DNA of 64,000 bases from IMGVR_UViG_3300046692_000091:124001-188000; one strand, 5' to 3'. Positions 38,416 to 41,688 are shown, counted from the stretch's first letter. Notes: generated by a model from the sequence alone, not told the origin. A program made the numbers and translations.

Positions 38416-38532
38416 GTGAAACGTTTCCTGACCATTGCCTTCTCCGTGCTCATTGGTAGTATCCTCGTAACAGGTACTCTCGTTCAACTGCAACTGACCG
38501 TTGTCAAAAATCATCAACTGGAATCGAAATGA
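38416..38532 (+). CDS. Small single-TM protein (38 aa)
   Basis: GTG start, MKRFLTIAFSVLIGSILV..., ATGA-coupled to next gene. Confidence 0.55.
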   Translation: MKRFLTIAFSVLIGSILVTGTLVQLQLTVVKNHQLESK

Positions 38533-38819
38533 ACAAGCTTTATACTCTCGCTTTTGCTTCTCTGATTTCATCGTGTGCCGCTACACCGTCTTATGCTACA
38601 CCTGTCCCTGTACCAGAATTACGTGGTGAGCTGATCGCCACTCGTTGCTTTGTTGCTGATGACAAGATTAGCCCAGTAGATTGTCTTGCCGTAGTGGACA
38701 TCGGCAATCGTCCGAAAGCTTTCGCTACTGACAAGAAAGACTACTCCAACCTAGTTGGTGAAACCGTAGTTGTGGTTAGTCAGGGTAATGGGTTTAACGA
38801 TATCGTCTCCAGCAAATAA
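38529..38819 (+). CDS. Putative lipoprotein
   Basis: Lipobox-like ISSC; paralogous to 39972. Confidence 0.65.
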   Translation: MNKLYTLAFASLISSCAATPSYATPVPVPELRGELIATRCFVADDKISPVDCLAVVDIGNRPKAFATDKKDYSNLVGETVVVVSQGNGFNDIVSSK

Positions 38820-39305: not shown

Positions 39306-39703
39306 GTAATCAACCTGTAACGCGTCGTATTTATAACCTGGTTCGCATCAAAGACAAACAAGGTAAAGCTTACACAGGCTTTGTTGTTGGTCTAGCCGAG
39401 AAGTGTGGTGATAGTGAACTCGATGGTCAAGCATTCTATGCCACCGAAGATCTCAGTGGTTGGACGGATGAACAGTTCGCTTTAGTCAATAAGAAACTGA
39501 AGGCCATCTGGGACTGTGCTGTCGATTATCTCGTATGGGATTGCACTCATGGCGATAATGAGCAATATATTTCCCGCATTTGTCCTGGTGATCTATTGTT
39601 GGTCATTGACGACAAAGTTGTTCCGGTTATCGGGGAACTACGTGAACTCATGTTTGAATATGAGCACTACACAGTTGATGCCCCTCTGGAGAAAGCAGCA
39701 TAA
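39302..39703 (+). CDS. Hypothetical protein
   Basis: 133 aa; RICPGDLLL resembles TIRPGDFLV of 35335. Confidence 0.8.
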   Translation: MSNQPVTRRIYNLVRIKDKQGKAYTGFVVGLAEKCGDSELDGQAFYATEDLSGWTDEQFALVNKKLKAIWDCAVDYLVWDCTHGDNEQYISRICPGDLLLVIDDKVVPVIGELRELMFEYEHYTVDAPLEKAA

Positions 39704-39975
39704 TGGCTAAGGCAGTCCGACATAAAAGTGGTGTGTGGATGCAACCAGGTACAGAAGGCTGGGAAAAGTATCATAACCCACCTGTAATAATGAAAGTACC
39801 TAATGCTCCACTCTCACTCGATCAGTACATGGACGAGCTTGATAAGAAGTGGCGTAAAGCCGAAGGGCGTGTTCCTGTTAAAGAACTGGATGAACGGGGA
39901 CTGATGCTAGAAGGCCGTATTCCATGGGACCCTGTTCGACTGAAACAACTCACCGAAGAACGGTTGGCTGCATGA
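39703..39975 (+). CDS. Hypothetical protein
   Basis: 90 aa, TAATG-coupled. Confidence 0.75.
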   Translation: MAKAVRHKSGVWMQPGTEGWEKYHNPPVIMKVPNAPLSLDQYMDELDKKWRKAEGRVPVKELDERGLMLEGRIPWDPVRLKQLTEERLAA

Positions 39976-40253
39976 AGTATATCGCTATCCTGATAGGCTT
40001 GCTACTATTAAGTGGTTGCGAACCAACAGCTATATACACAACCAAAGGTACTTTGATCGGAGCTAATTGCGGACCAAAGGTCATGGGTCGTTATGGCACC
40101 GCATTTGATTCTGGTTGTGTTGTTGCAGTAAAGACAGATAAGGGAGTTTCGACTTATCCTGTAAGTGTAGATAATACCACAATTGTAGGTTCATCTGTGG
40201 TCGTCATTGAAACTGGCAAGGAAATGTATCGGGTAATAAAGTCAATTGAATAA
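39972..40253 (+). CDS. Putative lipoprotein
   Basis: MKYIAILIGLLLLSGC lipobox. Confidence 0.75.
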   Translation: MKYIAILIGLLLLSGCEPTAIYTTKGTLIGANCGPKVMGRYGTAFDSGCVVAVKTDKGVSTYPVSVDNTTIVGSSVVVIETGKEMYRVIKSIE

Positions 40254-40282
40254 GGAGATAATGTATGTGTAATTTAAGCATA

Positions 40283-40314
40283 CGGTAGCCTGCCTCATTT
40301 CGAGGCAGGCACCG
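40283..40314 (+). promoter_or_regulatory. Strong hairpin without U-tract
   Basis: cggt(a)gcctgcctc-atttc-gaggcaggc-accg. Confidence 0.45.
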
Positions 40315-40332
40315 CAGTGTGAGTAATTACCA

Positions 40333-40593
40333 ATGTCTGCTGACAAACAAACGCGTGCATCAAACCGTTACCACGATTTCCGTATCATCCGTAATCAGTT
40401 GTCAATCTGGAAGTTTCACAATCCGACTGGCGGCTGGTTGTCGGCACAGAAGCCATCAGGCTGGCGTAAACGGAAAGCGATGAACTGTAGTTGTCATACC
40501 TGTCGTGGTTGGGCTAAAGATGCGCGTCAATTTCGTTACGATTACCAGTTGGAGAAATCCGGTATGAAACGTGAAGAATACGAAGGGATCTAA
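40333..40593 (+). CDS. Small basic protein with CxCxxC motif
   Basis: NCSCHTCRG. Confidence 0.7.
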   Translation: MSADKQTRASNRYHDFRIIRNQLSIWKFHNPTGGWLSAQKPSGWRKRKAMNCSCHTCRGWAKDARQFRYDYQLEKSGMKREEYEGI

Positions 40594-40748
40594 TGCGTAC
40601 ATTCATGAGTGTTAAAGGCTTTCGGCGTTGGTCTCGTATGGGACTGGCTGGACGAATCAAACAGCTCATTAAAGACGACATGGGTAAAATGAGTTGGTTT
40701 CGACCAACTCGACAGAAACGCTGGGTTCCTGGTAAGGAGGAAACATGA
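40593..40748 (+). CDS. Small basic protein (51 aa)
   Basis: TAATG-coupled; MRTFMSVKGFRRWSR... Confidence 0.55.
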   Translation: MRTFMSVKGFRRWSRMGLAGRIKQLIKDDMGKMSWFRPTRQKRWVPGKEET

Positions 40749-40795
40749 ACGACGAATGGGAAGGCTACATCACTAATGAAGAGGAGTGGATCTAA
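40745..40795 (+). CDS. Micropeptide MNDEWEGYITNEEEWI (16 aa)
   Basis: SD aaggagg; ATGA overlap. Confidence 0.45.
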   Translation: MNDEWEGYITNEEEWI

Positions 40796-40839
40796 TGAGA
40801 GAGCTCGATTGGGATCTGTTCGTTAAGGAACTGGTATGA
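40795..40839 (+). CDS. Micropeptide MRELDWDLFVKELV (14 aa)
   Basis: SD gaggag; TAATG overlap. Confidence 0.45.
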   Translation: MRELDWDLFVKELV

Positions 40840-40931
40840 AAGAAGGAGAGATTGATCTCGGCTTTATGGTTCGACCTGCCCAACACAGTGATGGTTGGGA
40901 AGATTACTGTGACGAACGTCCAGATATCTAA
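40836..40931 (+). CDS. Acidic micropeptide (31 aa)
   Basis: SD aagga; ATGA overlap; ends before terminator. Confidence 0.45.
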   Translation: MKEGEIDLGFMVRPAQHSDGWEDYCDERPDI

Positions 40932-40940
40932 CAACATATT

Positions 40941-40960
40941 GGCTACCCTTCGGGGTAGCC
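40941..40960 (+). terminator. Intrinsic terminator
   Basis: ggctaccc-ttcg-gggtagcc plus T tract. Confidence 0.85.
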
Positions 40961-40997
40961 TCTATTCCCTTTTCTTTTTTGAAACTTTTTAAAGGCC

Positions 40998-41005
40998 TAT
41001 ATTAC
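40998..41005 (+). promoter_or_regulatory. Early promoter TATATTAC
   Basis: Exact motif with aaactttttaaagg upstream. Confidence 0.8.
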
Positions 41006-41036
41006 TTTCTTGTAATTACCCACAAGAAGGAAGCTA

Positions 41037-41285
41037 GTGATGTCTCTTACCGCTGTTCTGTTTTCTACTATGATCGGTTTCAATGAAGGCAACGCTCGCC
41101 CTGCGGTACCCAGTCAAGAGAAGATCGAATTCCGTGGTCCGAATGCGATGTCAGCATGTCGCTCATTCGAACCAACGCTGCATACCAAACCACCCACGCA
41201 GTATGGTAACCGCAAAGTGTCAGTTGATACTTACGGGAACGGGATGGTACAGCGTGAAACTTTCTGCGTGCAAACGGAGCAATGA
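41037..41285 (+). CDS. Putative secreted small protein
   Basis: Hydrophobic N-terminus, two Cys. Confidence 0.65.
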   Translation: MMSLTAVLFSTMIGFNEGNARPAVPSQEKIEFRGPNAMSACRSFEPTLHTKPPTQYGNRKVSVDTYGNGMVQRETFCVQTEQ

Positions 41286-41659: not shown

Positions 41660-41688
41660 TTGACACGATAAGAGCCATCACCTATAAT
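41660..41688 (+). promoter_or_regulatory. Consensus sigma70 promoter with overlapping inverted repeat
   Basis: TTGACA (41660-65), 17-nt spacer, TATAAT (41683-88); 9-bp IR gagccatca/tgatggctc at 41672-41696. Confidence 0.7.

Follow-up and report, generated by a model that had tools for sequence, protein, structure and literature searches.

How short can a gene be in a phage genome, and what could its product do? The question is raised by a locus in a window of 64,000 nucleotides (IMGVR_UViG_3300046692_000091:124001-188000), i.e. bases 124001-188000 of a single 314,814-bp viral contig from a rhizosphere metagenome. Here, an open reading frame (ORF) for a basic protein of 86 amino acids (aa) is followed by four overlapping ORFs of 51, 16, 14, and 31 aa, the last three of which encode acidic peptides. 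At the DNA level, the contig shows about 70% identity to three jumbo phages of Pseudomonas, Psa21, D6, and 201phi2-1. These three phages were retrieved when a phage collection was searched with the region in distant mode, and a near-identity search of the same collection gave no match. For comparison, 16 distinct loci were used that had been retrieved via the 86-aa protein alone. They share its first ~78 residues, hereafter the N-domain.

The acidic peptides are composed of modules of 5-8 residues, namely EEY[ED]G[ILF], D[EV]RPDI, EE[ED]W[IV], [IL]DWDLF, [EK]xDLG[LFI][FMV], DEHDDL, WEDYC, and GVGEG[IL]. Across the N-domain-anchored loci, the residues of these modules are constant and the wobble positions vary freely. 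The proline of RPDI is encoded by CCA, CCT, CCC, and CCG, and the DWDLF motif, found in 11 loci, changes only at third positions or between Leu and Ile. E[ED]W[IVW] stands directly before the stop codon in 19/19 cases, with TAA, TGA, and TAG all in use; for RPDI this holds in 17 of the 26 cases.

Pairwise comparisons gave a consistent picture. The related locus L008 is 96% identical to the window and shows no indels. Within the 31-aa ORF, synonymous and nonsynonymous differences from L008 are in the ratio 5:3 in the proposed frame (2:6 and 0:8 in the other frames), and differences from L015 in the ratio 11:4 (1:14 and 3:12 in the other frames; frame comparison, p = 1e-4). The module parts of this ORF carry only synonymous changes with respect to L008. 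A similar excess was detected for the 51-aa ORF, for which comparison with L008 gave 16:10 in the proposed frame, and 3:23 and 2:24 when read in the other two (Fisher p = 2.7e-6). The 14-aa peptide is identical in L008 and L015, each of which has one synonymous change. Orthologues of the 16-aa ORF are present in L008, L014, L015, and L027; in these, ITNEE(E)WI is invariant and other changes are conservative (W/Y, Y/F/L). As residues are kept, wobble positions are free, and a synonymous excess arises only in the proposed frames, the comparisons support the micro-ORFs as translated units under purifying selection at the peptide level.

A preliminary description, made from the sequence of the window alone, had reported the 51-, 16-, 14-, and 31-aa ORFs as a chain behind the 86-aa ORF, joined by exact TAATG and ATGA overlaps. 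Direct reading of the sequence confirmed this chain (Table 1), in which each ORF is shifted by -1 relative to the preceding one. It also bore out the order of two basic proteins before three acidic, Trp-containing peptides (pI 10.0 and 11.8 vs 4.1-4.3), the Shine-Dalgarno (SD) sites before the last three ORFs, and a terminator 9 nt after the last stop codon (40929-40931). The SD sites are AAGGAGG, 5 nt ahead of the start of the 16-aa ORF; GAGGAG, 8 nt ahead of the 14-aa ORF; and AAGGAA, 6 nt ahead of the 31-aa ORF. The start of the 51-aa ORF is preceded only by a weak GAAGGG. Overlap of stop and start combined with an SD inside the upstream ORF is the arrangement of translational coupling. The conservation of the ATGA and TAATG junctions, which the preliminary description had named as a check, was found in L008, L014, L015, and L027. 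The terminator hairpin is kept in most relatives, 6-10 nt 3′ of the last ORF, and by prediction marks the end of the transcription unit. The order of the unit is thus uORF (a short upstream ORF) with hairpin, basic protein, detached linker, three acidic peptides, and terminator.

It had further been suggested that perfect chaining with SDs is unlikely to arise by chance. Chaining in itself, however, is not improbable: when the 314.8-kb genome was shuffled in blocks of 300 nt, similar chains appeared, with about two ATG starts per genome heading a comparable four-ORF chain, counted without an SD requirement. A second four-ORF chain, the only one besides that described here, is present in the genome outside the window (C1 ~206195-206336, minus strand) and may be a product of chance. 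The reality of the micro-ORFs follows from the comparative evidence and not from the chaining.

Annotation does miss ORFs of this kind, as had been expected. The records of the phages pf16, phi-2, and nickie contain no annotation for the micro-ORFs, the 16- and 14-aa ORFs were passed over in the JGI gene calls on L008, and in 201phi2-1 the entire N-domain gene is unannotated. In the latter phage, the N-domain gene and a downstream micro-ORF of 21-23 aa (L003 2869-3207; record 259769-260107) lack annotation where the gp numbering skips 359. The product of the upstream gene, gp358 (29 aa), is itself composed of GVGEGL, EEYEGL, and DEYEGY modules.

Beyond the N-domain, the proteins of the 16 loci differ fully in length and order, yet they contain the same modules. 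In several proteins, modules follow the N-domain within the same reading frame: P0008 (EEYDGL, two RPDI units, and KEWV), P0013 (DERPDI, EEYEGL, and EEEWV), the Psa21 protein (IDWDLF and EEDWI), and likewise P0016. Separate module ORFs, each started by ATG and preceded by an SD, were found in the window, D6, L005, and L012-L017. Modules within one chain are usually joined by a two-residue linker (IT, VT, AT, or CS), and stop codons fall at the same module boundaries across loci. In several loci, the sequence encoding EEEWV and its stop also supplies the SD and ATG of the next ORF. L027 has kept two micro-ORFs without any N-domain gene, and a motif search of the 314.8-kb genome found the modules nowhere else. 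Judged from these comparisons, the module is the unit and works fused, free, or alone in an unrelated phage. Going beyond the preliminary description, the peptides are evidently pieces of the modular tail of the 86-aa protein family. At the end of the 86-aa gene, a patch of 24 nt is replaced between the window (40567-40590, KREEYEGI) and L008 (2735-2758, CPNSKELI), which looks like an in-place swap of a module.

To follow the modules beyond the N-domain, IMG/VR was scanned with degenerate DNA patterns for M-x-E-[LI]-DWDLF, DERPDI-stop, and DVRPDI-stop. As these patterns select for residues, synonymous variation among the additional matches is not independent evidence; their ORF-likeness and host distribution are. 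The modules recur, either fused to a basic protein or as free mini-genes of 7-31 codons, in at least seven unrelated groups of Pseudomonas phages. Besides the window's own clade, tiny ORFs with these modules are present in (i) L027, a 317-kb contig with the micro-ORFs EEYEGF-IT-NEEWI and EIDLGFM-DERPDI after a homologue of the window's 90-aa gene, followed by the same terminator; (ii) Lu11 and Lu11-like jumbo contigs (P. putida), with ...REEDWL-stop, a 13-aa ...DVRPDI, and an 8-aa M-N-DERPDI, succeeded by the conserved hairpin element and a remote N-domain homologue; (iii) the T4-like pf16 (P. putida), with an 8-aa M-H-DERPDI overlapping a 13-aa ...DVRPDI between phoH and an annotated terminator; (iv) the T7-like phi-2 (P. 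fluorescens SBW25), with an 8-aa M-L-DERPDI directly 3′ of the scaffold gene stop, i.e. between the scaffold and capsid genes; (v) nickie (P. syringae), with an 8-aa M-I-DVRPDI overlapping the nrdA stop; (vi) L021, 89.5% identical to vB_PpS_SYP (P. plecoglossicida), with a 14-aa peptide containing LDWDLF and EEDWI; and (vii) L039, a relative of Torfinnsbu (P. poae) and DDSR119 (P. putida), with a 9-aa M-K-R-DERPDI behind a strong SD. In pf16 (L050 1199-1245), the 13-aa DVRPDI peptide starts inside M-H-DERPDI in the +1 frame, and L031 has the same layout.

Two natural comparisons show gain or loss of single mini-genes. The phi-2 mini-ORF is missing from phiGM22-3 as an indel of ~24 nt, the pair being 97% identical over the compared stretch, and the nickie mini-ORF is absent from its relatives phiK7B1 and Nican01. 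Because it is lost between such relatives, the mini-ORF behaves, as far as genome comparison tells, as an accessory cassette. All identifiable carriers are phages of non-aeruginosa Pseudomonas and belong to different families. In the smallest of them, including a 43-kb T7-like phage, no other common accessory gene was seen.

Matches in the controls were scattered and chance-like. A reversed-peptide pattern matched IMG/VR six times, with no ORF-like match. In 596 Gb of bacterial and archaeal genomes, DERPDI-stop had 119 scattered matches, with no Pseudomonas among the 80 listed. An ATG lies within four codons upstream of DERPDI-stop in 15/26 IMG/VR matches vs 2 of the 80 listed bacterial matches (p = 1.3e-9). 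Six of the IMG/VR matches (L028, L034, L037, L040, L046, and L048) are probably due to chance.

What might such peptides do? Our preferred explanation, to which we assign a little less than an even chance, is that the acidic peptides are trans-acting ligands for a factor of the Pseudomonas host; binding, host partner, and effect are inferred. Ribosomes translating the 86-aa protein would re-initiate at each overlapping stop and start, yielding the detached 51-aa basic linker and the acidic peptides of 16, 14, and 31 aa. Each peptide would be a string of one to three conserved modules, in which a run of acidic residues leads up to an aromatic or hydrophobic anchor; the module at the end of the peptide would expose an Ile, Val, Leu, or Phe as free C-terminus. 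As short linear ligands working in trans, the modules would then fill a binding site on a factor of the fluorescens, putida, and syringae groups of Pseudomonas, for host take-over or counter-defence; it would make no difference whether a module resides on the N-domain protein or on a free peptide. By analogy, peptides that block basic grooves or fill hydrophobic pockets are built in this way, from an acidic run with an anchor and in many cases a free carboxylate. A host-factor ligand is proposed because the identifiable carriers are all phages of non-aeruginosa Pseudomonas from different families, the cassette is gained and lost, and the smallest carriers lack any other common accessory gene. 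The recurrence of the modules across phage groups points to a class of phage peptides, so far undescribed, that would be directed against a host factor. The preliminary description had cast the peptides as inhibitors of host proteins that mimic nucleic acids or docking motifs. The docking-motif part of this proposal agrees with the behaviour of the peptides as short, independent motifs, which can be fused or free and which stand by themselves in phages that are unrelated but infect the same host genus.

Several points weigh against a host-factor ligand. The sequencing runs that carry the region consist of DNA only. If free, peptides of 7-16 residues may not persist for long in the cytoplasm. 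The modules adjoin the N-domain gene in two jumbo lineages, and their partner could be that protein. The restriction to one host genus rests on the identifiable subset of the matches. In the bacterial genome scan, no conserved host protein ending in DERPDI was found, so that simple C-terminal mimicry of a host tail is unsupported for this module. A bolder form of the proposal, which we hold to be doubtful, is that phages of the fluorescens, putida, and syringae groups horizontally share a vocabulary of ultra-short acidic effectors that neutralise host immunity or a hub protein, some being only 7-8 residues long (e.g. M-x-DERPDI), and that these are strung together, fused to a carrier, or used alone. 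If true, these would be the first ribosomally made, trans-acting effectors of counter-defence or take-over with fewer than ten residues known in phages.

Other explanations were weighed against the same data. The modules could be an acidic tail acting on the basic, probably zinc-binding N-domain protein itself. Like the acidic aromatic tails of T7 gp2.5 or T4 gp32, they would bind or mask its nucleic-acid-binding surface, the free micro-ORFs being split tails that bind in trans. Alternation between fused and separate forms is typical of parts that interact, the partners carry complementary charges (pI 10-11.8 vs 4.1-4.3), and hairpin element, N-domain homologue, and acidic micro-ORFs are found together in the unrelated 201phi2-1-like and Lu11-like lineages; even the distant homologue P0026 still has WEDYC, GVGEG, and DERPDI. 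We nevertheless consider this account rather unlikely, since the peptides are found without an N-domain gene in L027, pf16, phi-2, nickie, and the SYP-like contig locus, the N-domain homologues P0024 and P0025 have no such tail, and charge masking needs less than several distinct, sharply conserved motifs. Possibly, the peptides work instead in cis, as nascent chains: acidic sequences with Pro or Trp at the stop codon would, like elements of the TnaC, SecM, or MgtL type, pause or destabilise the ribosome and so tune re-initiation, terminator formation, or stability of the 3′ end. The stop-adjacent position of the modules, without exception for E[ED]W[IVW], would fit this, as would the short distance of 5-10 nt between the last stop and the terminator stem in the window, L027, D6, L014, and pf16, the existence of ORFs of only 7-8 codons, and the double use of EEEWV-stop as SD and ATG of the next ORF. 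Yet in fused arrays many copies occupy internal positions, each of the three stop codons is in use, and what lies downstream is not constant (scaffold/capsid genes in phi-2, a position after nrdA in nickie). Restriction to one host genus is also not expected of a signal directed at the ribosome, and should the phage build a nucleus as its relatives do, translation would be separated from transcription. A role in cis thus appears improbable.

A special version of the host-factor proposal takes DWDLF and DLG[LF][FM] for sliding-clamp-binding motifs that block the host beta clamp. The lead is a likeness to the consensus QL[SD]LF or QLxLxL. All 11 DWDLF and 11 DLGxx instances, however, have Asp at position 1 in place of the near-universal Gln, variants such as DLGFM and DLGIV drift off the consensus, and DERPDI, EEDWI, and EEYEGI would be left unexplained. 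When the P. aeruginosa beta clamp (DPO3B_PSEAE) was co-folded with the 14-aa peptide, the score was 0.02; as the tool is uncalibrated for chains of fewer than 30 residues, this weighs neither for nor against the motif. We hold clamp binding to be very improbable. Finally, the small ORFs could be the debris of a longer, frameshifted gene, or chance ORFs. Chains of this kind do arise by chance, the 51-aa ORF is dispensable (absent in L015, broken in L014), and the window and L008 differ by replacement of a whole patch at the end of the 86-aa gene. Against this stand the persistence of frames, starts, SDs, and residues among loci with N-domains of only 51-91% identity, the synonymous excess in the proposed frames, and the presence of the same peptides in unrelated phages. 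The debris explanation is already contradicted by these comparative data, and its probability is close to negligible.

No known family fits the predicted products, their only assignable memberships being translational coupling and phrog_4499. Pfam, NCBIfam, a PDB sequence search, and the protein atlas gave no match for the 86-aa protein or the peptides, and no description turned up when the full-text literature was searched for the motif strings and on phage micropeptides. Among known systems, the single-strand-binding (SSB) proteins T7 gp2.5, T4 gp32, and SSB with its DDDIPF tip have acidic C-terminal docking tails. The locus resembles them in combining a basic domain of nucleic-acid type with a disordered acidic tail that has a hydrophobic or aromatic end and a free carboxylate. 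In contrast to these proteins, it lacks an OB fold and does not end in PF (the C-termini here being RPDI, EEW[IV], YEG[ILF], and HDDL), and its tail is a mosaic of conserved modules that also occur as free mini-genes and in phages without the basic protein. An SSB-type tail was rejected, the N-domain being predicted as helical with no Pfam or PDB match and no D-D-D-I-P-F-like tip. Type II antitoxins such as MazE and CcdA bind their toxins with acidic, Trp-containing C-terminal tails, and here, too, a basic N-terminal domain is combined with an acidic, Trp-containing disordered tail of the kind that plugs a basic groove. The difference lies in the lack of sequence homology and in free peptides shorter than known neutralising segments. 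This class was also discarded; the two flanking ORFs scanned had no toxin family match, and the N-domain had none in Pfam or NCBIfam.

Mimicry of short linear motifs is well described for eukaryotic viruses. The modules share with these motifs a length of 5-8 residues, portability, stacking in disordered tails, and shuffling; they differ in belonging to phages, in being partly stand-alone peptides of 7-31 residues, and in that no host motif was found. Small phage effectors include T4 Stp (26 aa), T4 Dmd (60 aa), T7 Gp0.4 (51 aa), and lambda Kil (47 aa). These are, like the micro-ORFs, accessory and strain-variable products at operon ends, whereas the micro-ORFs go down to 7-8 codons, are modular, and are common to unrelated phage families. 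Leader and arrest peptides (TnaC, SecM, and MgtL) likewise come from tiny ORFs with conserved stop-adjacent residues rich in acidic residues, Pro, and Trp. Unlike these, the ORFs described here lie at the 3′ end, have internal copies, and use any stop codon; 3′-terminal position, the lack of a constant downstream gene, and use of TAA, TGA, and TAG count against this class. Arbitrium and RRNPP peptides are similar in having very short, highly specific sequences, and SKPDI of NprX resembles x-R-P-D-I (in three residues only), but no processing sites are present here and the hosts are Gram-negative. A secretion signal of this type was excluded: the ORFs of 7-31 codons start with M-[KRNH]-[ED] and have no hydrophobic leader. 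No Pfam or PHROGs match to a TPR receptor was obtained in three neighbouring ORFs (39703-39972, 39924-40250, and 41037-41282).

Mimicry of a phage tubulin tail is unsupported, as PhuZ tails share only an acidic-Gly-hydrophobic flavour with EEYEG[ILF]. The PhuZ of 201phi2-1 ends in ...DEDGMVV, and chimallin tails are not acidic. The PhuZ of this genome (C1 241304-242227, outside the window) is 32% identical to 201phi2-1 gp59 and ends in ...DDISEDGFIAD; the Pfam Tubulin model does not detect it. Likenesses of three to four residues each to the FtsZ C-terminal peptide, the ClpX/ClpA IGF/IGL loop, the DinI C-terminal helix, the MazE/CcdA tails, and NprX are taken by us as leads only.

The N-domain protein has 13 homologues at 54-91% identity, in addition to more distant ones. 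The N-domain is basic, contains an invariant Cys triad in MNCSCxTCRGW, and ends in QLEKxGM in all 16 loci. Residues 1-58 of the 86-aa protein match phrog_4499, a family of unknown function (E = 1.5e-7), as do the distant homologues P0024-P0026 (E = 2e-11 to 7e-17). An AlphaFold2 model of the N-domain is helical and of low confidence (predicted local distance difference test, pLDDT, 61). The 51-aa ORF is homologous to a basic linker that follows the N-domain in frame in D6 and Psa21, is absent in L015, and is frameshifted in L014; for these reasons it is evidently a detached and dispensable linker of the N-domain family. Additional small basic proteins of 53-58 aa are encoded between the acidic micro-ORFs and the terminator in L005 (3483-3659), L012 (2453-2629), and L013 (2567-2728). 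One of these matches phrog_7399, and the 53-aa protein has a W-x-K-R-x-M-x-x-C stretch in common with the N-domain.

Upstream, the N-domain gene is preceded by a 5′ element (40252-40314) to which, by its conservation, the uORF belongs. Nearly every relative has a uORF with the pattern M-x-x-L-[SI]-[IT]-R-stop, the conservation of which looks like one at the nucleotide level (TTTAAGCATACGGTAGCC). Its TAG stop falls within the 5′ arm of the hairpin, for which 17 pairs are predicted across 14 loci; in five of these pairs, both partners have changed in a compensatory manner. In Lu11-like contigs, the element (TTTA..CATACGNTAGCC plus hairpin) likewise stands ahead of the remote homologue of the N-domain. 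Candidate roles are those of a structure close to a promoter, a site of processing, or a device for coupling. Rfam covariance models run over 40100-41200 gave no match up to E = 1.

Table 1. Position of the predicted features of the micro-ORF locus, counted from the first base of the window
Feature	Position	Strand	Remarks
7-codon uORF, M-C-N-L-S-I-R	40265-40288	+	Strong SD AAGGAG at 40252-40257
Conserved RNA hairpin, predicted	40283-40314	+	Between uORF and N-domain start codon
86-aa ORF	40333-40593	+	Basic, pI 10.0; N-domain (residues 1-78) and one-module acidic tail
EEYEGI tail module of 86-aa ORF	40573-40590	+	
51-aa ORF	40593-40748	+	Very basic, pI 11.8; start joined by TAATG overlap
16-aa acidic ORF	40745-40795	+	ATGA overlap; DEWEGY (EEYEG-type), IT linker, C-terminal NEEEWI
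14-aa acidic ORF	40795-40839	+	TAATG overlap; [IL]DWDLF module
31-aa acidic ORF	40836-40931	+	ATGA overlap; modules EIDLGFM, GWEDYC, C-terminal DERPDI
Intrinsic-terminator-like hairpin and T-rich tail	40941-40980	+	Hairpin 40941-40960, 8-bp stem, TTCG loop, GC-rich
TATATTAC motif	40998-41005	+	3′ of terminator

The surroundings of the unit were inspected as well. The TATATTAC motif lies 3′ of the terminator in 12/12 loci where the latter was located, and is predicted as the likely start of the next unit; it resembles the phiKZ-type early promoter consensus and is a putative promoter. A perfect sigma-70 consensus promoter (TTGACA, 17 nt, TATAAT) is present at 41660-41688 of the window; relatives of this jumbo phage use their own RNA polymerases. 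Two small genes just upstream of the unit (38529-38819 and 39972-40253) encode lipoprotein-type signal peptides with a lipobox Cys, and one of them has a weak match to the Cor superinfection-exclusion family (phrog_1119, E = 0.04).

The modular tails show gene fission and fusion at the scale of a single short motif. Nature provides pairs of phages that differ by one 24-nt mini-gene, namely phi-2/phiGM22-3 and nickie/phiK7B1. If the peptides are made and active, they would represent a functional layer of phage genes of 7-31 codons, far below every annotation threshold, in which mini-genes are exchanged among unrelated phages of one host genus and rearranged like words. They would then constitute a new kind of phage effector and, at the same time, natural minimal ligands for a Pseudomonas protein.

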